The notes under the pieces were generated by a model, which saw nothing but the letters and a program-made list of their open reading frames with translations, made no database searches and was not told where the DNA came from. From assembly GCA_013115145.1 (NCBI GenBank), contig JAAPAO010000002.1:124001-188000 (forward strand): a stretch of 64,000 nucleotides of DNA, read 5' to 3'. The translations under genes were made by a program, and so were the position numbers. Of the stretch, positions 7,529 through 57,137 are shown in pieces (position 1 is the stretch's first letter; every line of letters begins with the position of its first letter). This DNA comes from Perkinsus chesapeaki ATCC PRA-425. Its lineage: Eukaryota > Protista > Perkinsozoa.

Positions 7529-7550
7529 CTGCTAAAAACAAGAAACTAAA
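7529..7550 (-). promoter_or_regulatory. Putative trans-splice acceptor (polypyrimidine tract plus AG) upstream of ADPGK
   Basis: Minus strand tttagtttcttgtttttagcag lies 9 nt before the ATG, and no upstream coding donor is obvious. SL trans-splicing is known in perkinsids and dinoflagellates. Confidence 0.35.
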
Positions 7551-7999
7551 CCGCCCACTTCCAAGTGCTCTCTAGCCTCGCCGATTCTGTCGTGGAACTC
7601 AACGTACAAACAGCAAGTGATAGCAACATCATTTACATACAAGTGCATTTCTAAAGCTCATGATTTCCAGTGCGGTCTGCAGACACGACCCTGTATGAGT
7701 TGGATGTACCCTGGAGAGGAAAATCCTCATCACATTCATTGTAGAAAAGAACGCTATTGAGTAGTCGATACCTGAGCGAACTGCTGAGCTACATACTATA
7801 CTCTTACTCCCATATTCTTACACGAAAGTATACAAGCAAATTACTAATAGTGAAAGGAGACAGCTTCTTGTGTAGGATTTGCGGTGCTTCGGAGGGCGTT
7901 TAGACATCAAAATGGAACTAGACGGCATGTACTACGAGCGTCTTTGTGAACCCAACTCCCGAATAGATTACACCAAGCAACATGGGTGGTGGATTAGTC

Positions 8000-9045
8000 T
8001 TAAAAGGCATTATGATCGAATTCTAAGGAGCATCCTGAAACGAAAATCCTGTTACAAGCTCGAGAGGAAAGACGAAAGCCCTAACAGCTCACTTTAGTGG
8101 CCAGAAGACCCAACTCAAGAGATGTCTGATAAATCGTGCTAATATTGCGCACCTCCCAACCAGGCTGACAGAACGATAGGTATGCCTTGCACGCCAGTCG
8201 CCAGGACTCTCCTCGTTAATACCTCAGCAGTACTCCAGTCTGCTTGACGCTCCTCCTCAGTTAGTCCCCAAAGCTGCCCTCCGCCGGTGACTGTGACATC
8301 AACCTCCGAACCATCATCGTTGACTTCGCCGGCAGATTGCTCGTCGCCATCGTCCCCTATACAGCTTCGTTCGCCAGAGCTCCTCCAACCGTGAACCCTT
8401 ACCGTCTGGAGTGCTTGCTGAGCTTGATAAGTTCTTGACAGTATTCAAACGAGAAACTGATGAAGAAACCTGGGCATTGCACCTCGGAATGACGCGAGCC
8501 TCCTACTTCCCGACATGAACGTCTGCATAGTCCGCAAAGTCTTGGCGGACTTCACCCAGAGGTCGTGAATGGCTCTTCGGTCAGCCATGGGGTACCACTC
8601 TCTCAGAAAAACGACCACATAGTTGCACAACTGCTTAAGAACCTGCAACGGCGGTCGGGCAAAAGCAGTGGCAGACCGCGCCAAGACCTTCGTGTGCCCG
8701 ACGTTGCGAGGATCGAACAGCTCGTCATTGTCAAAGGTTTTCCTCTTGCCCTCGACGCAAATGAACTGCAGTACCCCAGTTGTAGTTCTCTTATCGAACA
8801 ACGGGTATGAATGGAGGACATATCTGTATGAAGTAGTTACGAGCGAGCAAACCATACACGAGCACGTTTCTTCCTTGGATGAGTCTCGCCGATGGATATA
8901 GCTCTCGGATGAGTCAGGCGGGGAAAGGTCCACAGAAGGGTCGTAAATAGCTGCAAGCTTATCCGGCTGAGAAGAGTGGCTCCGATGATTTCGATTTTTT
9001 TGTGAACCTTACTTGCCCCTTTTTCGGTGTACCGTCATCCGTCAT
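8000..9045 (-). CDS. Hypothetical multi-exon protein (boundaries approximate; may be continuous with the upstream GAF gene)
   Basis: Protein-like 162-aa ORF 8445..8933 containing CSCMVC, flanked by plausible short GT-AG introns. No family recognised. Confidence 0.4.
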
Positions 9046-12000
9046 AGATGGCAAAGTGAAAGTTTGCGGGCAGCGCGAGCGGACCTGTTGTATCGCGATA
9101 CCGAATTGAGTTCAGCGTACCAATCCCCTACTGTGTGTCCGACTACACCCGTCATTCCCTTAGCACATGGTCTCAGTTGTCTGTCCAGCTGTTTAGAATC
9201 TATTTGAGAAGACCGCCGTCCGAACGAGGCGTCCTCATGATGGTGTTGCACTCCGCCGGCCACCTAAGAAGGCTTGAGCCGAGAGCCACGGTTGGTAGTT
9301 ACAAATTGCGCGGTGACGTCCCCGACGACCAGATGCAAAGCGACTTTTTTTGCATGGAAAAGCTCGTTCAGGTACCTTGAGTATACAAATAATCGACAGT
9401 TGTTCATCGAACTGTGAGAGACAGTATAGAGACAAAATGTAACCCACGCATCGCATGGTATTCATCTTCAGAGTGTCCAAACAGTAAAGTACACCAGAGC
9501 ACCCCGGTATTACAAACTCAGCATCCCCATAAGCGCACTTGGACTTGTGCAGTGCTGCATCATCTCCGTGGCGAACTGTAACAAATACCCTTGACCTGCC
9601 CACGCTAGATAAATGGACTTCTCGCAAAGATGATAGCTCACGCTTCATCGACCATCCACTAACGGCAGTCTTCTCAAAGACCAACAGCATCTCCAGTCCG
9701 AGCACCTGGATAGTAACTCGCTCTCACCCCGACTATATAGACTACCGCAATGTTCCGCAGGATGATTTCATCGTCATGATCAAATATCGGATCGCGTCTC
9801 TTATTAACCGCTTGTACCTAGTTAGTACACGGTTCAATATTATCTGATGGCAAGCACCGCATGAATTACAATGCAGGTGACCTTTCCGTCGTTCACTATT
9901 GGCACGCAAAGCACAGACCGTGTGCGATAGTTAGTAATACGGTCGAAACTGACATCAACAATAGAGCAAGAGAACGAGGAGTCGGCGAACCTGCTATTGA
10001 ATCTCTTATCCTCGTAAGCATCATATATACTAACAGAATCCCGCAGAAGATAAGCACTCGCCACCAACCCTATCCCCTCAGCATAAGGATCAGTCCCCCG
10101 TTTCGGTAGCTCCACCTTCCAACCGCCATACAGAGCAAATCACATACAGCCTATTACCTCTAGGCGGTCGTAATCGGTCTCCTCTGCGTTCTGCACGTAT
10201 GTCCACATGATTCCCTGCGTCGCGTCCACCACCCAAATAGAACCACGGTCGCAGTCGAGAGCTTCGCAACTGATGTTCTACAAGCAAAAGAGATATAAGT
10301 GGTCAGATCTTCATCGGGTTAATACAATTAATGTGTTGATTAGGTGATCAATCGCATGCACTTCGAAAAGACTCTTCAAGCGGCCGAAGGCTCTTGAGAT
10401 TGCGGCCGAATACCTATTAGACGTACTCAAGTCGTCAATACCAAAGGCGATGGCAGAGTCTAGCTGTACTTCTGCTGGGCCCAAAACTCTGTTCCCAATG
10501 CGTTAATACAATCGAGCCTGCCACGTTCGGTCGCCACAAAGTCCGCATCGCAGAGGTATGGTAGAGTACACCGCCCACGAGTCGAAGTGACCTGGAATAC
10601 CAATAGCCTACCCAATTCTCTGAGCAGTAACATACCATCGTCAAAAAGTCGATTTGCTGTGGTGATAAATTCATGAAGGCTTTGGGAATTGGAACGCCGT
10701 TAGACTTAAACGGCGCAATCTGAGAGCACTTGTTTCCATAGCTGAACCCCAGAGATTTACTACCAATGTAGTACCGCGTTGCTTATAAGGAGTAATGACC
10801 GGCAATTTATCAATTTTGTGGCCGACCGCATCACCGAGAATGCTCTTGAGATGGGATACTGTATTGACGAAGCCATATCTGCCCGAACACCTACCGACAG
10901 GCGGATGCACTAGACATACCCGGCAGCCAAAGGGCTCTCGTTCATTATCTTCCATACCACCTGCGTCAACTTCGACCGGGCCTCTTCATCCGAGTTAGCC
11001 CTGTCCACCACAGACGTTTCGGGTCCAATGACGCTCTACTATTACGCTAGCAGTTTTTCATGGTACGCTATCAGCGACACAACCTCGGCTTCAAGAACAG
11101 CGCTCTTGGCCATCCACCATTTCTTCTGCCTCTCCAAAACAGTCATTTGTTGTATCTGACGCCATCAACTTCCACCCTGAGAACTCGTATTATAAGCTAC
11201 GCTTGTTGCCAACTGATTTGCCAAGTAGCGTGCTCGCTTAGCATGTAAACCTTTATCATCAGCTATCCTCGTGCCTGTAATCGCAACAAATTTAGGGGAT
11301 ATAATTCTTCCATATATGCACCTCGAGAGGTCCTTGGGCCGTCACGCGGCTGGTTATTCGGGTCTCCGGCGCCTTCCTTCTCTGCCGTTACAACAGCCAG
11401 TTCGTGTTGCAGTATACCCACGTTTCTCGACAGATGCTCGAACCTTTTATAACATAAAAATCGGGTAAAGGCCTCTTCAACTACCTTTGAGCGTCTGCAT
11501 TAGCCCTTCTCTGCAGGACTTCACATTCCTTTGTCTTGTTCGCCAACTCAATCTTGGCAACCGTGAGGTCGGACTCGAGCTTTTTCACCTGGAAGTATGC
11601 CATGTAGCAAGCCTACGGAAAGGTTAGTTCTCACCTGCCTCTCAAGCGTATTGCATTTTTGAACTGCAGACCCATGGTCCATGGCGGTCGTATGCAACTG
11701 CGCGCAGATTGAATGCAGCTTTCTTGTCTACACACAGCCTACTACCTTCTTTGCCAGTTCAACAATGCGCGACTCGGCACAAACGCAGTCACCCAACTCC
11801 TGCGAAATACTTTCTATTGCACGCATGCCCTCGGGGATATCTTTCCGTCGCGAAAGCAAGGTTAGCGCACCACGAACTTGATCCCAACCTAATACACCAG
11901 ATCACCAAGCCCTGTAAAAAAGTTGGTCGGCCCCGGCAAAACCGATTTCGCATGCCAATTCACCCGCTCAGTTATTACGCCATTTTTGCTTTTCCACTAT

Positions 12001-12750
12001 TTCCACACACATCTCCAATAGCTCTGCCACCTAACCATGTCGAATAAGAGCAACAGTATTCTAGTGAGCGCTCACTACCTTATTGTCCATCTTGGGTTCG
12101 CCAGTTTTGTTCAACAAAGTGATATCATCACATGCCTCCCTGATGTCATTGAGTCTTTGTTTGTAACATCCACGGCTCCGAGACGATAAATCAGTTCTGA
12201 GCAGTCACATTTGACTCGAGCAAACGCTTCTATCTGTAGCAGCCCACTTCCAGGTCGAAGCTGAAACTCCAGCTAGTGAATCCACAGAGACGTCATGCGT
12301 CCACGAGCTAGCTGTCGTCTGGTCATGCTCATGCGGCTCATGTACTTTGTCTCGTTTCGCAGCCGCTGCATGCAAGAAACGTGTTAACAGCAGCTCAATG
12401 GCACTCGCATGGAACTATTTTATAGGTATTACCAGCCTTCTTCTTTTTCTTTTTCGGTGATTTCGGATCGTATATGGCGGGAAGTCTCGTACCCTAAAAT
12501 CGAGCTTTCATCAGAAGCATCGAATCCGAGCAATGAGAGCTAGAGAATTGCCACGTATTCGCTGCTTTCCCGAGTGCCAGTAGGCCGCAGAAAAAAGTAT
12601 CCCCACAAGAGCTCACCCATGAGCGGTTCTGGCTTTCCCGCTGCCTCGTTACCAGACAGACTGTTCGCATTTCATGAATGTCGGGTGCTGAAGAAGTGTT
12701 CAGTAGCATTGCGATGAAACAGCATAGCGATGTTGCGCTAATCAATCGTA
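9042..12750 (-). CDS. Coiled-coil plus GAF-domain protein (multi-exon; ends approximate)
   Basis: Exons at 9840-10115 read GIGLVASAYLLRDSVSIYDAYEDKRF...DRITNYRTRSVLCVPI, followed by DDDEIILRNIA, a GAF consensus. Upstream exons are heptad-like (KKLESDLTVAKIELANKTKECEVLQRR). Confidence 0.6.
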
Positions 12751-49420: not shown

Positions 49421-50980
49421 TCATGCCGGCAAGAGAGTACCATAATCTCCATCGGGAGCGTACAATTGCCTTCTTCCGCGAATAGAATACCATTTACGGA
49501 CGCTTGCCGCCAAAACAAAAAACGCAAACGCCACACATATCAGCGGAACAAAGTCTCCGGACACTGTCGCCCCGGTCGGTTTCCCATTTCCCAATTCGAC
49601 TGTCGCGACCAGAACATTCTCGCGTTCATTGCGGCTCTGAAAGCGGGCCTTTTTACGTCCGCTAGGGTCAACAATAACAGAGTCCCAAGCGAGATCTGCC
49701 TTCGCAATAGCAACGCGGTTCTCTACCGCCCGGAAGACGGCCTGAGAGAGATGATCCCGAACCGCGGACCAGTCCTGGGATGGGTTCAGCACGAGGCCTG
49801 CTCCTTGCAGGACAATAGATCGCAGAGTGCTGGGGAAATCAATGTCATAGCATATGAGCGTTCCGACTTTCCCGGTAGCACTAACGTTCGGCCCAAGAAG
49901 AGACGACTGCGGAATTTCGTACGTCGGATATCCGAATCTCAAGGAGCTTTCTTCCCCTATCAATGTTAAAGGCTTCTGTTTGCCGTAAACCCCGAGTCGC
50001 TTCCCTTCTGGTCCCACCATGACCGCGATATTACCGCTCTCTCCTACAAGTGCGCCAACGGACATGAAAATGCCCAGTTCGCCAGCGACTGGCGAAATCT
50101 TGCTGTCGACGTAGTCCTCGGCCTCTGTGAAACTCTTGAACGGACCAAGCCATATTTCCGGCCAAACCACAAACTTCGCTCCGTCCTGCGTCGCCACTTT
50201 CCGCGTTAGATCAATTTGCCTCTCCAAGGTTGCATTGCAAGTAGCATCTTTCTCATACGTTTCCACCAAAGACATATTACAAGACACTCCTCCGAGTTCT
50301 GCTCCTGGAGTGATGGTCGCCACAGTGACTGACGGCGCTCTGTATATTCGGGGAACATAAAATTGAATAACGGAAAGGCAGCACCAACCTGCCATCCCCC
50401 AGAAGAGGAATTTGAAAAGGGCTTTGCGCTGCCGGGAGAACGCAATTTGCCCGAGGGCGGCGTTGACAGCGAAAACCGAGAATTCCAGGGAGTACAGCCC
50501 TAGGAACGATATAGGTTGAATAAGCATAGGTGCGTCGTGGAAAGGCGTACTTAAGGCAAAGAACGTTCCCAACAGCAACGCGGTAGCATAAACGATGGTA
50601 GTCCAGTACGCTGCCCTCCGCACGGGTTTACTTAGATTCGACTCATCGTCGAACAGGTAGGCGTCCGCACTGTCCATGGTGTCCCAAAGCGCGCCCCACA
50701 CGGCCCCTGTGCCCAAACCGATGTACCATTCCAGACCAATCGTCCAAAAAAATATTGCCGAGCATGCCATGAACGTCGCTAATGAGACCAGGAGGGACCT
50801 TTGGTACTCCTGGGATGCAATCATAGGGCAAACGCAGATCAAAGCGAGCGGCCAGATTTCCAAGGGCTGGTCGAGGCCGAACTTTATCGTCCGCAGATTA
50901 TATAGCACGACCGAAAGGCCAGAGAGGAGAAAACTCAGCAAAGTAGGTCGGGTAACTGATACCGAGTCATATAAAGTCAT
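49421..50980 (-). CDS. Apolipoprotein N-acyltransferase (Lnt)-like membrane CN-hydrolase, intronless, 519 aa
   Basis: N-terminal multi-TM region, then VVWPE (E), YGKQKPLTLIGE (K), LICYDIDFP (C), PSQDW, AVFRAVEN, DSVIVDPSGR and a C-terminal GDFVPLIC TM. This is the Lnt layout. Confidence 0.85.
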   Translation of the reverse strand: MTLYDSVSVTRPTLLSFLLSGLSVVLYNLRTIKFGLDQPLEIWPLALICVCPMIASQEYQRSLLVSLATFMACSAIFFWTIGLEWYIGLGTGAVWGALWDTMDSADAYLFDDESNLSKPVRRAAYWTTIVYATALLLGTFFALSTPFHDAPMLIQPISFLGLYSLEFSVFAVNAALGQIAFSRQRKALFKFLFWGMAGWCCLSVIQFYVPRIYRAPSVTVATITPGAELGGVSCNMSLVETYEKDATCNATLERQIDLTRKVATQDGAKFVVWPEIWLGPFKSFTEAEDYVDSKISPVAGELGIFMSVGALVGESGNIAVMVGPEGKRLGVYGKQKPLTLIGEESSLRFGYPTYEIPQSSLLGPNVSATGKVGTLICYDIDFPSTLRSIVLQGAGLVLNPSQDWSAVRDHLSQAVFRAVENRVAIAKADLAWDSVIVDPSGRKKARFQSRNERENVLVATVELGNGKPTGATVSGDFVPLICVAFAFFVLAASVRKWYSIRGRRQLYAPDGDYGTLLPA

Positions 50981-51133: not shown

Positions 51134-54100
51134 CTAGCCGTCACGAGCCTCAACTTCGGGCTCGCTCTTGGCGACTACTTTTGACCACATAAGCTCGTCT
51201 TCCTGGAACATGTTGTACCTTTCAGCGGCTTCGCAGTGCTTTTCCCATTTTCCCCACTCGTCCGCATACCCCTCTTCATCGTCATCGACTCGGCCACATG
51301 ACGCCATAGGGTCTCTGAACATCTGATCAGCCGTCAGCTTCATATAATGGGAGAATCTCCGGCACCAATTAGCCGGGTAGAACTCGGGTGCTAGAGTCAC
51401 AGCAAAGGACCAGGCCCCACGAGCGCTGTTCTGCTCCAAGCTCATGCTCCGTTTGCGGTGGCCGGGCCCTTCACGCCACTGCTGTCGCTGGACCCAGCCC
51501 CACGATCTGTCATTATCGTCGTCACGGAAGCCAACCTTGTCAACGTGGACGTGACGCAACCTCCCATTGCCGCGAACGCGAGTATCCAGCGAGAGGAAGT
51601 TCAAGAGAGTCGCTTCGGGGTTACCTGGCTGGTCAAATACGGTATAGTCCCGCCGCCTGAGCTTATCAGAAACATGCAGCACCGCATCCATCACCGAGCC
51701 TCTTTCCAAAGAAAAGTCAAAGTCAAAATCGCGCCAGTCGGCCAGTAGAGCCAGCATCTGGCTTTCCATCGGCCCGTCTCGCAGCGGCGTGTAGAGAGTC
51801 ATGCCGACGTTCTCGTTCTGGTCAGCGCGAGCCAAGCTGAGAGTTATCCAAGCAATTATCATATGCTCCAGCGGAATGTGGTAATGCTCCTCCGCCAGGT
51901 AGCGGAAGTGACAAATGAATCTATTTGTAATTTTGCAATAATGATGATATGCATCTCGGGTCATGAATTCATCATAGAAGTAGGACCCGCGGAAGCTGCT
52001 TCGATCCGGGGCACCATGGGTCACTCGGAGACCATCGTAGAATCTTTGTTGCAGCAGAGGGCGAGGGTCCACCACCTCGAGTGGTTCGGCAGTCAAGTCC
52101 TCGTCGGTGAATGCCTTGCTAAGGTCATCCGCGATCGGAAAGTAGGAAAGAGCGTCCGACCACGCATGGCGTATCATAATAAAGAGGAACTGGCGTCTGA
52201 CGATGTACTTCTCTGGATCGTTGGGGTCGTCGATGCGCTGTTGTACCAAATAGAGCTTCAACGGAGTGTCATCTGTCCTGTCGTCTTCCATGTCGTTCCT
52301 AGCGCGGAACATCTGCCGCTGACATTTGCGAGGATCTTTTCCCCAAGACCAGCGAACACCGATAGGCACATGATCGTCACGCTCAGTGCACACTACCTTT
52401 ACCCAGGCATGCCACAACGGCTTGCAAATCAGCACCCTTAGCCACCAGGCGGTCCAAGAGTCCTCGGGAAGGCGAGACAGAGTAGGTAACAGCACCATGA
52501 CACTGTCGTAGAGGAAACTGGCTATTCGCGCCGGCCCAACGATGTGAGCTCGGAGCATAGGATGACGGTCGACCATACGATCAACGGCAGCTTGGAGGCG
52601 ATCCATGTCGAGATCACCGCGGATCTGGAAGGCCCACTTGCACACTCTGGTGAGCTGACCAGGCGCGAACCACGCGCGGAAGGGCTCGTTAGGGCCTATC
52701 GGTCTCAAAGCCTCCTGCTCTTTCCTGGGAGACTGCAGAAGTTCCACCAAGCGCGCAACGTCTTTGCAAATCAAAACGTCCTTCGCAGCAACTTGTACAG
52801 GGAGCTTCTTCATCAACATCGACACTTGCAGTGAGGTCATCCCGCCGAGATCCGTCTCAGCCTTGACGTTAGACCAACCAGTAATACCCGACACCAAGGC
52901 GCACACGTCCTCTAAGTTCACATCACCAACCAGTTGGGTAGCATCAGGCACTGTGCGAACAACGTTACGGACGCCTTTCACGAAATGGGTTCTAGTCCAG
53001 TCGAACCTATCTAGCGCTCGCTCTTCCCACCACCACTTCAGGAAAGTACGATATCTGTAGACCTGGGGCGGAACCTCCAATTTCTCATTCGGGACAGACT
53101 CTTCCTCAGTTGTTTCGATCGGTGTAAGCGTTTCTGGAATCTCATCAGCATCCGACGCCGACATGATATCGTCATCCACACTCTCGTGATCACTTGGACC
53201 AGGAGTAGCTGCAGCAACACCACTACCCTCAATCGTCAAGGTAGGCGAGCCTGTGGTGGACACACCATTACCATCGTCGGAGTTTCCACCTTCACTTTCC
53301 CTCACGGGCGAAGCGTTCTCGTGTTCGGAGAGCAGCCGGATCTTCGACAGTTCGGTAGCCTCCTCTACGCCCCCTTCTGGGGCCTCATCAGTCAGCACAC
53401 TGGCGGCGTCATGTCTTCCCAAACCGCCGTCGATGCTTTCGTCGTCCCTGGGCGCATCCACCTTATCGTCCTTCACAGCACTCGCAGCATTCCATGACCC
53501 TGCATTCTCCCAATCAGACGCATCCTGTGCAGTGCGCAACCATTTGAATGAGAAGTACCACCAAAACCACTGAGCGTTGTACTTCATCTGGCGCTTGGCG
53601 AATCCCCAGGAGAACCACTTGGCCGATTCGTAGCTGCCCTGGTTGCCTATAGCATACCAGAAAGCAGGAGCCCACGACAGGAGGCGACCGTCTTTGAATG
53701 CCAACCATGCCCCGATGAGCGTCCAAGCCCATGTAAGCCGCTGGACTGGCTTGAAACGGCGCGACAGAGCGAACCAACCAATGAAGAAGCCAAGACGATC
53801 AAACGGCGAATTTCTGATTAGACGCAAAAAGAATAGGCCCGCCCGCTCTCGCAAGGTTTTCGCGTCGTCGTTGAACGCGGTCATATGGAGGGTCGACAAC
53901 CACATATAAGGAAGGTGCAGCAGGAACTCGCGCGGACCACAAGCCAAGAAGGATCCTGCGCCCCAGAGACCGACACGCTTCCACGCGCTCATCAGGCGGC
54001 GCCATCGCTCTGGCTCCGAGGAAAGCCTCCAGCAATTCTCATGACCGAGCATCTCCTTTACCAACTGGAATCGATCTATCTTGTTCGTGTTGGCATTCCT

Positions 54101-55928
54101 CGGCAAAGGCTTGTATGACATACGAATCGTCAAGTCGAGCACGGCCGCATCCTTATTGGCAGCCAAGGCGCTTCGGAGAGTGTTGTACTGGCCAAGCATA
54201 GACAGAGCCATCTCGTCCTCCTCGGTTATCGCATACGAGGGCGCTTGCAATTCCCCATCCTCCGAGCCACTGCTGTCCGAGGAATCAGCATACCAATCGT
54301 CAGAGTCGGAGTCACTCTCCTCCGCCTCGGGCTTCTTCATATAAACAAACATATAGTTGCGACCGTTGTGAGAGAGCACCGAAGCTTCCTCGACGGCTGC
54401 ACCACAGGACAACGCGAGCTGCTCTATTGGGAGAGCATCAATCCATACACCACCAGAAGCTTTGAGCCGACCCCCTAGACGGCCAAGGTAATGTATCCGA
54501 CCTGCAATGATGAAATGAGACCAGCGCGCAACCTCGTTCCCCAGTAGTACCTGCGTCATCCATTTCGGCGACGTCTCCAGTTCTGAACCAGCCTTCGGCG
54601 TCTGTTAGAAGTTGACAAACGAACGGCCCGCGCATCATAAGCTCGCCGCGCCTCCGACTAAGTTTAGAAAGATGTCGCTCGTTTCAACTATCAGACCTAT
54701 TACCCGCTCCTCGACGGATCCGTCTCCTGGTCACCCAATGGGGCGAGTTTAATCGCTACTTCTTTGGAACGCAGAGTTCGGAACATACCACTACCGTCTG
54801 AGATGAACGCCGATGGGGAGCTAACCACGAGTAGCTCTAGACGAAACTTGAATCACTCTCATCTGCAGCTGCGAAATCCCATAGTGTCAATTCCGATTCA
54901 ACCAAGTTAATCCAACCCCCTATTACCGTCGCAAAGCAAACACAGCCAGAACTCGGTGGCAGTGAGCAAATCAATCACTCGGGCGGATCCGACCAGGGCC
55001 TGGAGCTCGGCGAGCTTGGCCGGAGTGGATGCCTCGCCCCAAAGCAACAGGTGCGTCAGCTTGCATTTTGACAACAAAGTTGCGTTCAAGAACAGCTGAG
55101 TCGGAACCGCACCTACTACTGTGGGAGGGTAGGCTGTGCACTGCAGACCGGCCTTCAGGTTATCAGCGAACAGACATACACCCCCTATCGAGAGAGCAAT
55201 GTTCACCTGGCCCATCATAGACGCCAACCATTGGAGACCCGCGAACTGGAGGACCACCGGTTGGGGGCCGCCTGGCGGCAACTTGACCACCTCCTGGGCG
55301 TATCCTCGCAGTTCCGATAGCGGCATACCATGCGTAACTATTATCATTTTTGGTGTTCCAGTGGTTCCGCCGGAGAACATCTTGAAAAGGGGCCTGTAAC
55401 CGGGGTCGCAAGTCGACAGCTCGGGAGCCTCCCATCCGGTTGGACGAGCCGGCACATCCTCCGGAGCGTCGACAACACGACACGGTGCCATCGAAGCGAG
55501 GCTCCCTGTATTCCCGACTCCTGGTCGAGCAATCAGGATATCAGGTTTAGTTTGATTGATAAGATGACGTAGGCGCCTAAAATAGTATACAACTTTTTGA
55601 CACAAATCTGACCACCCCCGAGTTACCCTTCGTTTGCAGAGGGATCCAACGGGGCCATCACCGTACCAAGAGCGCTGCATGCCAATAACACACTCACCCA
55701 GGTGGCCGATCGCTCGATCGCCACTCCCACACAGTCCCCTTCTTTAACCCCCAGTACTTCACTGAGCCAGTAAGCCATGTCTTTGCCCTTACTGCAGATC
55801 TCAGCGTATGTCAACACACCCGTGACGGTACCATCAGTTTCGAGTGTCGCGCACGCAGTGAGGCTAGCCAGTAGAGGGTCCTCGAAAGCGTGATGGTAGA
55901 GGTTATAAGGGTACTTGTAGGCCACCAT
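51134..55928 (-). CDS. Single-module NRPS-like protein: A domain - Trp-rich insert - carrier (T) domain - terminal condensation domain
   Basis: A-domain motifs LTYAEI, MAPLDP, FSGGTTGTPK (55348-55380), LWGEA, GELMMRGP, WFRTGD, GRIHYLGR and NKIDR. T domain DLGGMTSLQ (Ser codon 52832-52834). C domain GDLDMDRLQAAVDRMVDRHPMLR and RHAWSDA (52151-52171). Several 5' introns, then an exon of over 3 kb. Confidence 0.85.
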
Positions 55929-56073
55929 AAGACTCAAAAGATGTCGAGTCCGACGCCAACTGAAAACGAACATTGCTACCGCGGCAAGTTTCCCAGAACT
56001 CGATGTCCAAGACTAGTGGGGAAAGTCAGTGTAAATGGTGCAAAATTGATGTACAGGTGCGGACACAGGTCAC

Positions 56074-56553
56074 TTAGCATAATAGCGGATCCAGCGGGGC
56101 GGCAGGTACTGGTGGCGGTCCCCGAAGTCCTTCGCCGAGTTGCACGGTAACCTGACCCTCTGGTTCGACGGAATATCCCGACAGTAATGTTGTCGCATCG
56201 CAAATTAATTGCTGATTGCCGAAATCCAGCGGAGTGGGACCTTCCGGGGCCTCCGGTGCCGCCATAACTGCCGCCAAGTTACTGGTTTCTTCCACTGGCG
56301 TATTGTACGGCATCGAAACCGATAAACTCGCTCGAGAAACCCCTCGTGCACTCAAACCGCAGCAGTGCTCGTGTGTTTGCTTTACCACACGGTCGCCTGT
56401 GGTCACTAAACGGGCCTTGCAGCCTTTTCCCCGAGACTTGCAAGCCCAATAGACTCGGTCCTTGTAAACTCGCTGCATGTGGTACACGTTGTCGTCTACT
56501 ATGCAGACTACTTTGCCCCGCTGCGACGTCCGGAAAGTGGCAGTTTTCGCCAT
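56074..56553 (-). CDS. FLYWCH-type zinc finger protein
   Basis: SQRGKVVCIVDDNVYHMQRVYKDRVYWACKSRGKGCKARLVTTGDRVVKQTHEH matches the FLYWCH pattern (YW-C...C-ARL...H-H). Confidence 0.75.
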   Translation of the reverse strand: MAKTATFRTSQRGKVVCIVDDNVYHMQRVYKDRVYWACKSRGKGCKARLVTTGDRVVKQTHEHCCGLSARGVSRASLSVSMPYNTPVEETSNLAAVMAAPEAPEGPTPLDFGNQQLICDATTLLSGYSVEPEGQVTVQLGEGLRGPPPVPAAPLDPLLC

Positions 56554-57137
56554 CAAAAGAACATAAAATCAACTAATTCACGACTGCTTATTATTCTCGA
56601 AATCTCCTCTCCCACCGATCGCCGCCTCGGCGTTGCGGTATAGATTTACAGATCTTGCATTCTTGTCTTTCCTCAACGTTTTTCTGCGTTGCCTCCGAAA
56701 ATACAAGATTGGACCGCTAAGGTTACCTGTATACCTTGACCAAGCATCGTCGGGCTACCCTTTGCATATCACGGCTCAAACCCACTGGAATGATGCCCTG
56801 TTCGACTGATTCTCAGGCGTCTGCCTCTCTGGATGACCCTAGCCAGATTCTGACGGTAGCTACTACGTGAGCCCCGACGGTGCCTTGGCGCATTTAATTT
56901 GTGGTGCTAATCCTGTGTTATAGTCCCTCGCCCCCTCCCCTAACCCTCCCTCGCTTGTCCTATTCGAGGACTGCGTATCGCTGACCGTTAGCCTTGAACA
57001 AGTACCGCCAACTGGGCACAGGTTTTTCGTTTGATCATCGGTCCTCTCAGGCATTTAGGATAACTGTGATTAATCTAGGCTTGTACCGTGACTTCTTTGT
57101 TGTTTGCAGAGCGTTCGGTCCCACCACCCTTCCTCCT

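Follow-up and report, generated by a model that had tools for sequence, protein, structure and literature searches.

A predicted single-module NRPS-like enzyme of Perkinsus chesapeaki with a conserved tryptophan-rich helical domain between its adenylation and carrier domains

Domain order and proposed function

The shellfish parasite Perkinsus chesapeaki carries an unusual synthetase gene on the minus strand of a 64,000-nucleotide (nt) stretch of its genome, here called the window (strain ATCC PRA-425, GenBank assembly GCA_013115145.1, contig JAAPAO010000002.1, positions 124,001 to 188,000). Its product, of 1,506 amino acids (aa), is predicted to consist of an adenylation (A) domain, a Trp- and Arg-rich helical insert, an acidic linker, a thiolation or carrier domain (T, also called PCP for peptidyl carrier protein), and a terminal condensation (C) domain, which are parts known from nonribosomal peptide synthetases (NRPSs). 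We put the probability at roughly 0.55 that this one nuclear, spliced-leader-capped gene makes a stand-alone single-module A-T-C “NRPS-like” enzyme that works as follows. The A domain would adenylate a carboxylic acid other than an alpha-amino acid, the acid would be loaded as a thioester onto the phosphopantetheine of Ser941, and the C domain would release the acyl group onto an amine or hydroxyl of an acceptor made elsewhere. The Trp/Arg-rich bundle would most likely locate the enzyme at or in a membrane, or else bind a hydrophobic acceptor, while the 135-residue acidic linker would give the carrier reach to both A and C. New, as far as our literature search showed, is the conserved helical domain between A and T; the A-T-C order itself was already known. 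A previous sequence-only reading of this DNA had proposed the same succession of A, Trp-rich insert, acidic linker, T, and terminal C in one polypeptide, and our analysis supports that order.

Carrier and condensation domains

We assign the T and C domains because family profiles match them, because the AlphaFold model and its Foldseek matches identify their folds, and because their catalytic residues are invariant. A profile built from 83 T-C segments of the family, searched against the Protein Data Bank (PDB), yielded matches to PCP-C didomains (1.7e-19) and PvdL (5.9e-29), and the PCP and C parts were collinear in the matches to solved didomains. The AlphaFold2 model of aa 860-1506, computed from the family alignment, has a predicted local distance difference test score (pLDDT) of 84.7 and a predicted template-modeling score (pTM) of 0.86, with most of the C domain above 90. 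When this model was compared with the PDB by Foldseek, PCP-C didomains came first (2jgp at 1.4e-18, probability 1.00; 8fx6 at 4.8e-18) among 228 matches at E <=0.001, with template-modeling scores (TM-scores) of 0.4-0.6 that result from inserts and the didomain pose. T-C segments of Swiss-Prot NRPSs, including FmqC, AmbE, and the terminal C of PpsE, were matched as well. Protein-language-model neighbors were annotated as Condensation in 95 of 100 cases for aa 980-1450 and as PP-binding in 90% for aa 860-985. The sequence-only reading had left it to structure prediction whether the C-terminal region folds as a condensation domain; on the model and its best Foldseek match, it does, and the last 460 residues are shown by this modeling to have an NRPS condensation fold in which His1163 and Asp1167 are intact.

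The family can also be traced by sequence. A phmmer search with aa 860-1506 against 1.84 billion representatives returned 159 proteins, among them NRPSs of 5,000-7,700 aa that were matched over T and the N-terminal part of C. Pfam recognizes Condensation in 38 of the 83 T-C relatives and PP-binding in 37 (best 9.5e-08). The predicted phosphopantetheine site, Ser941 (codon 52834-52832), lies in GGMTSL, for which relatives have GLSSL or GxDSL, and it starts helix 2 of the modeled carrier helices (aa 914-925, 941-950, and 966-974). The C domain has a C2-like RHPMLRA (aa 1030-1036) followed by RHAWSDA, which contains His1163 (codon 52168-52166) and Asp1167. The carrier Ser and the HxxxD had been called intact from the sequence alone, and Ser941, His1163, and Asp1167 indeed prove invariant among the 10 full-length family sequences.

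No thioesterase (TE) or reductase (R) follows the C domain; all that remains is a 58-aa acidic tail with no Pfam match, the last 27 residues of which have a pLDDT of <50. We propose release by the C domain because TE and R are lacking. This is the route that the sequence-only reading had suggested, and with a tail that matches no family it would be the natural one.

Adenylation domain and proposed substrate class

The A domain is recognized directly, with Pfam AMP-binding scoring 119.6 bits over aa 1-535 against a cut-off of 29.9. It has the motifs SGGTTGTPK (aa 169; P-loop, A3), TATE (aa 306-309; A5), FRTGD (aa 373; A7), GR (aa 391-392; A8), and the A10 Lys525, and the P-loop, T308/E309, T375/D377, G391/R392, and K525 are all invariant in the 10-sequence family alignment. 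Among solved sequences, the closest are LgrA (6.9e-18), a beta-aminoacyl-ACP synthetase group, and PltF, a set made up of NRPS A domains and carrier-protein ligases. We read the pocket at the positions of Asp235 and Lys517, using a MAFFT alignment that included five canonical A domains of multimodular NRPSs. Leu218 stands at the position of PheA Asp235, the amino-binding Asp, where relatives have Pro, Gly, Ala, or Ser; one position earlier, canonical A domains have Phe, whereas the family has an invariant Trp (Trp217). From the exchange of the amino-binding Asp for Leu we infer that the substrate would be a carboxylic acid other than an alpha-amino acid.

The C-terminal subdomain of the A domain contains an acidic, Ser/Asp-rich loop of ~40 residues (aa ~440-480; 54220-54100, minus strand), which in the family alignment is found in the Perkinsus sequences only.

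The helical insert and its surroundings

The segment between A and T is a conserved domain rather than low-complexity filler. It contains 18 Trp in 181 residues (9.9%, against ~2.6% elsewhere in the protein) and 24 Arg or Lys, and it shares the family motifs PYxWL, PFGxxG, and RxRLLxWPxxFWxGxG...E...W. AlphaFold2 predicts seven packed helices with a pLDDT of 85-97 over aa 550-680. An iterated hidden Markov model search (jackhmmer) found the insert in 49 of the collected proteins, always between A and T. The residues P617, G622, G648, A652, R657, F665, W666, W680, and W696 of the insert region, as well as W875 further along, are invariant in the 10 full-length sequences. The insert, the linker, and a WW helix set A and T far apart in the sequence: 416 residues separate the A10 Lys525 from the carrier Ser941, compared with ~55 in the canonical A-T segments that we aligned. 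The 135 linker residues vary in both length and sequence across the family.

The predicted fold of the insert has no structural relative that we could detect, which for helical folds is not proof of a new fold. The best Foldseek match in the PDB has an E value of 2.7, VIA-align gave no Z >=5 against 48,161 chains, and a shape search of the ESM Atlas gave TM-scores of <=0.24. Among the clusters of the AlphaFold database (AFDB), the search returned family members only, namely A0A812T1K2 (presumably a Symbiodinium entry) and a fragment labeled “Condensation domain-containing.” Pfam scans of 34 inserts yielded scattered single matches, none of them consistent, and a profile search for stand-alone homologs among proteins of 0.55-1.75x the insert length found same-family fragments only.

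Two further features accompany the insert in the family. A predicted helix with the motif (D/E)xWW(W)xx(K/R)xxxDxxD occurs family-wide ~40 residues ahead of the carrier domain. Many dinoflagellate members have one or two CxxC...CxxC (zinc-ribbon-like) modules between the insert and this WW helix; these modules are lacking in the Perkinsus copy studied here and in the metagenomic clade described below (family alignment columns ~400-760).

Gene structure and transcript evidence

The A-insert-T-C locus is a real, expressed, resident nuclear gene with a spliced-leader cap. The coding part runs from 55928 to 51137 on the minus strand, with the stop codon at 51136-51134, and its translation is 100% identical to FOL47_003274 (P. 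chesapeaki, 1,506 aa). Protein-to-window mapping gave the exons 55928-55626, 55575-54928, 54798-54703, 54656-54549, and 54499-51137; the intron coordinates in Table 1 are this mapping corrected for split codons. All four introns are short (46-129 nt), have GT...AG borders, and are confined to the part that encodes the A domain. The last exon is a single uninterrupted frame of 1,121 codons (aa 386-1506), which starts within the A domain ahead of A8 and encodes A8-A10, the insert, the linker, T, and C.

RNA evidence comes from four public 454 “RT-PCR” (reverse transcription-PCR) metatranscriptome runs, which are spliced-leader libraries, and it spans the first ~300 nt of the synthetase gene. One contig ends at 55961 and continues into the reverse complement of CCGTAGCCATTTTGGCTCA, the dinozoan spliced leader, while a second ends at 55626, the exon-1 donor. 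These contigs support the 5' end and intron 1. The sequence-only reading had taken the 5' introns as the mark of a resident nuclear gene, and the four GT-AG introns together with the spliced-leader acceptor bear this out.

Table 1. Features of the synthetase gene in the window, in the direction of transcription
Feature	Position in window	Strand	Residues	Remarks
Whole coding sequence	55928-51134	minus	1-1506	5 exons, 1,506 codons + stop; P. chesapeaki A-insert-T-C protein
Spliced-leader trans-splice acceptor (AG)	55960-55961	minus		~31 nt upstream of ATG; genomic context TTTTC followed by AG
A domain	54050-55928 (introns included)	minus	1-535	Pfam AMP-binding 1.8e-34
Intron 1	55577-55626	minus		50 nt, GT..AG; one RNA contig breaks off at 55626, leaving 6 letters unplaced
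Intron 2	54798-54926	minus		129 nt, GT..AG
Intron 3	54658-54703	minus		46 nt, GT..AG
Intron 4	54502-54550	minus		49 nt, GT..AG
Trp/Arg-rich helical insert	53480-54022	minus	545-725	AlphaFold2, family alignments
Acidic linker	53075-53479	minus	726-860	36 D/E vs 8 K/R; pLDDT <50, predicted disordered
WW(W) helix	53000-53068	minus	863-885	Trp875 invariant; pLDDT 65-75
Carrier (T/PCP) domain	52721-52942	minus	905-978	Family profile, Foldseek, Ser941 (predicted)
Condensation domain	51311-52687	minus	990-1448	AlphaFold2, Foldseek, family profile (predicted)
C-terminal tail	51134-51310	minus	1449-1506 + stop	Acidic, Trp-containing, Perkinsus-specific

Distribution and evolution of the family

The A-insert-T-C layout is common to perkinsids and dinoflagellates. 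The sequence-only reading had suggested looking for the architecture in the Myzozoa, and besides P. chesapeaki it is found in Perkinsus olseni, Polarella glacialis, Gymnodinium smaydae, Polykrikos kofoidii, Effrenium voratum, Prorocentrum cordatum, and an MMETSP strain. In full-length transcriptome open reading frames (ORFs) from Gymnodinium, Polykrikos, and the MMETSP strain, the A domain, insert, T, and C lie on one ORF. The closest relatives of the P. chesapeaki copy (~30% identity) come from gene-dense, intron-poor eukaryotic metagenome contigs, where they sit amid housekeeping genes. These compact-genome relatives are probably alveolates; an enolase that adjoins a more distant member (on ERZ28612958 scaffold_2869) is 75-77% identical to gregarine, Perkinsus, and Amoebophrya enolases alike.

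In a maximum-likelihood tree of T-C regions, the family is separated from multimodular NRPSs with 100/100 support, and the Perkinsus pair groups with the metagenomic clade (100/99). The tree comprises 47 regions after exclusion of duplicates and of fragments below ~430 query positions, and its root is a midpoint root only. Between P. chesapeaki and P. olseni, nonsynonymous divergence per site (pN) is lowest in C (0.07), followed by T (0.12) and the linker (0.32), against a synonymous divergence (pS) of ~0.73, which is saturated. On these values the catalytic parts are under strong purifying selection.

The P. olseni ortholog in assembly GCA_013115135 (JABANP010000678.1, stretch positions 7546-12343) is annotated as two gene models, one of 619 aa with AMP-binding and one of 780 aa. 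Its reading frame is interrupted twice, once in the insert (~9800-9970) and once in the C domain, after LSLDT. The split is an assembly or allele defect and not a gene boundary, since the frame breaks coincide with it and a second P. olseni-like sequence is intact. Just downstream of this ortholog lie an integrase-like ORF of 391 aa and a duplicated ORF of 108/120 aa.

The metagenomic contigs (ERZ28612958 scaffold_2869 and contigs of ERZ28612979 and ERZ27277814) reach 158 kb and are apparently intron-free, with intergenic gaps of ~80-300 bp. Two related species from one sample keep the same gene order around the synthetase gene: an arrestin-like array, the synthetase, UQ_con, and a MYST acetyltransferase.

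Comparison with characterized enzymes

The statement in the sequence-only reading that no characterized enzyme of this architecture was recognized goes too far, as both stand-alone A-T-C proteins (FmqC and AmbB) and membrane-bound NRPS-like enzymes are known. A-T-C proteins are an established, if rare, “NRPS-like” type, and the epsilon-poly-lysine and delta-poly-ornithine synthetases form a membrane-bound NRPS-like class (PMC10522769). Like the Perkinsus protein, FmqC (Af12050; 1,160 aa), of the fumiquinazoline pathway of Aspergillus fumigatus, is a monomodular A-T-C protein with no TE or R, and its T-C part (639-1155) superposes on our model at an E value of 8.9e-16. Work by Ames, Liu and Walsh in 2010 reportedly established that its terminal C domain passes the acyl group from the carrier to the amine of a free small molecule. 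However, the two proteins are only ~13% identical; FmqC activates L-alanine and has T directly after A, whereas the Perkinsus protein has 416 residues between the A10 Lys and the carrier Ser and is missing the amino-binding Asp. AmbB of Pseudomonas aeruginosa likewise has the A-T-C order with a terminal C domain, and its T-C structures (7x0f and 7x17) match at 3e-15. Unlike the Perkinsus protein, AmbB is bacterial and soluble, has no insert, and delivers its substrate to AmbE, a partner NRPS whose gene lies beside its own.

These two, the epsilon-poly-L-lysine synthetase Pls and the delta-poly-L-ornithine synthetase PosA, resemble the Perkinsus protein as single-module NRPS-like enzymes; they are membrane-bound and release their products by aminolysis with a free nucleophile, with no TE (PMC10522769). 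Their six transmembrane helices come after T and are interleaved with three beta-helix-type segments that lack the C fold (PMC10522769), whereas the Perkinsus protein has its hydrophobic domain before T and a canonical C fold at the C terminus, and we detected no sequence relation between them. A eukaryotic fusion of an NRPS-type A domain with a membrane domain is also found in TmpL of Alternaria and Aspergillus, which is reported to have an AMP-binding domain, six transmembrane helices, and a FAD/NAD(P) domain (PMC2766074). As described there, TmpL differs from the Perkinsus protein in having no T or C, and its membrane part is ferric-reductase-like (PMC2766074). Finally, PapA5 and the terminal C of PpsE, from mycobacterial phthiocerol dimycocerosate synthesis, are C-superfamily acyltransferases that move carrier-bound acyl groups to lipid hydroxyls. 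The T-C segment of PpsE matches the structure model. PapA5, which stands alone with neither A nor T, is the sole match of the single protein over this region in NCBIfam and the PDB, weak and far below family cut-offs, and we do not claim membership; the match is collinear over the C2-like and HxxxD motifs (NCBIfam 0.0017; PDB 1q9j 0.38). Full-text searches of the literature turned up no publication that describes an A-[helical domain]-T-C enzyme or Perkinsus NRPS-like genes.

Alternatives to the proposed mechanism

How firmly can the mechanism be attributed to this protein? Several results weigh against it. In single-sequence scans, which were run on a 1,141-aa ORF, Pfam PP-binding has no match even at E values up to 10, Pfam Condensation reaches 11.2 bits against a cut-off of 30.6 (E 0.15) and covers the C2 motif only, and NCBIfam does not recognize T or C in the single protein. 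The canonical HHxxxDG is reduced to RHxxxDA (R-H-A-W-S-D-A); its first His is Arg or Lys throughout the family, and Gly has become Ala in Perkinsus only. The body of the gene has no reads in the 454 runs, where contigs with the spliced leader cover the 5' end only. The insert of this copy has a maximum 19-residue Kyte-Doolittle mean of 0.96, the lowest of 34 relatives. The acceptor, moreover, could be carrier-bound on another synthase instead of free. In that case the protein would be a loading or initiation module acting in trans, with its terminal C domain condensing the acid onto an acceptor held by the carrier of another synthase, either a polyketide synthase or an NRPS. AmbB works in this way with AmbE, and both the AmbB T-C structures and AmbE are among our fold matches; in addition, dinoflagellate surveys that find many A and carrier domains but few recognizable C domains have led to the postulate of an unknown C activity acting in trans (PMC8283056). 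We nevertheless consider such a module unlikely, given that no partner gene is adjacent either here or in P. olseni, that the compact-genome relatives are flanked by unrelated housekeeping genes, and that AmbB-type modules have no counterpart of the conserved hydrophobic insert. It is far less probable still, to the point of being hardly credible, that A and T-C are separate genes or that the locus is a decaying pseudogene. The two-gene annotation and broken frame of the P. olseni assembly would fit that view, but the ORF in the window is unbroken from A8 to the stop, the second P. olseni-like sequence shows no disruption, pN falls well short of pS, the catalytic residues are invariant, and transcripts of relatives are single ORFs.

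The hydrophobicity of the insert bears on a further alternative, in which a cytosolic enzyme uses the insert as a soluble helical bundle for dimerization, docking, or the binding of a hydrophobic substrate. The least membrane-like of the 34 inserts is indeed that of this copy, whose lowest summed Hessa-type value is +7.6 kcal/mol (an approximate figure). Its bundle is compact (pLDDT >90), with short helices of 15-24 residues that have a high content of Arg, Lys, and Trp and are bordered by basic residues. The P. olseni ortholog reaches a maximum of 1.03, so that the Perkinsus pair is the least hydrophobic as well as the Trp-richest of the set. However, the equivalent aligned helices are transmembrane-like (Kyte-Doolittle mean >=1.6 over 19 residues) in 22 of the 34 relatives, and distant family members have two insert windows >2.0. 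Short hydrophobic helices flanked by Trp and Arg are, moreover, typical of interfacial or monotopic membrane binding. We find a purely soluble bundle improbable. The membrane anchoring suggested by the sequence-only reading survives in part: membrane association is a reasonable reading at the level of the family, from the transmembrane-like segments of most relatives, while this copy falls below the transmembrane threshold and its own association is plausible as, at best, interfacial.

Returning to the A-T-C enzyme with release by its C domain, a bolder version of it can be framed. The helical domain might be a new membrane-embedded or interfacial module that captures a lipid or polyol acceptor and presents it to the C domain, and the family might then be dinozoan-specific, lipid-tailoring, ATP-driven acyltransferases. 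This version is speculative, and on balance we doubt it. If it were true, it would explain part of the “missing” condensation activity in the natural-product and lipid chemistry of dinoflagellates.

Implications for dinozoan NRPS-like chemistry

Surveys of dinoflagellates have found thousands of A domains and almost no C domains, and an unknown condensation activity has been proposed (PMC8283056); the dearth of recognizable C domains has likewise been noted elsewhere (PMC6361889). The T and C domains of the present family are missed by such surveys because most members score below standard Pfam cut-offs. Perkinsus can be cultured and transfected, which makes the family a small, genetically tractable entry to the product of a one-module, possibly membrane-associated synthetase. 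The family also raises the question of what role a new 180-residue helical domain plays inside an NRPS module. And for NRPS enzymology in general, how does a carrier shuttle between A and C despite ~400 residues inserted between A and T?

Neighboring genes

The synthetase gene lies between two other ORFs on the same strand. Downstream, at a distance of 154 bp, an ORF of 519 aa (49421-50980, minus strand) matches Pfam CN_hydrolase at 1.5e-15 and has a sub-threshold match to LNT_N (0.0056); from these matches it looks like a bacterial-type apolipoprotein N-acyltransferase (Lnt). We considered a functional “mini-cluster” of the synthetase with this Lnt-like gene and the FLYWCH zinc-finger gene on its other side, and rejected it. 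Neither neighbor adjoins the P. olseni ortholog, although this synteny comparison draws on one fragmentary assembly and is a weak test of linkage, and the FLYWCH gene has a spliced-leader site of its own, which also speaks against a cluster.

The FLYWCH zinc-finger ORF (3.1e-11) lies upstream of the synthetase gene at 56074-56556 on the minus strand, with its spliced-leader junction at 56574. The 454 libraries cover it at a contig depth of 14-79, compared with ~2 at the 5' end of the synthetase gene. Because of its own spliced-leader site and its far higher contig depth, we regard the FLYWCH and synthetase messages as separate. In one 454 run, the FLYWCH ORF has an extra C after 56126.

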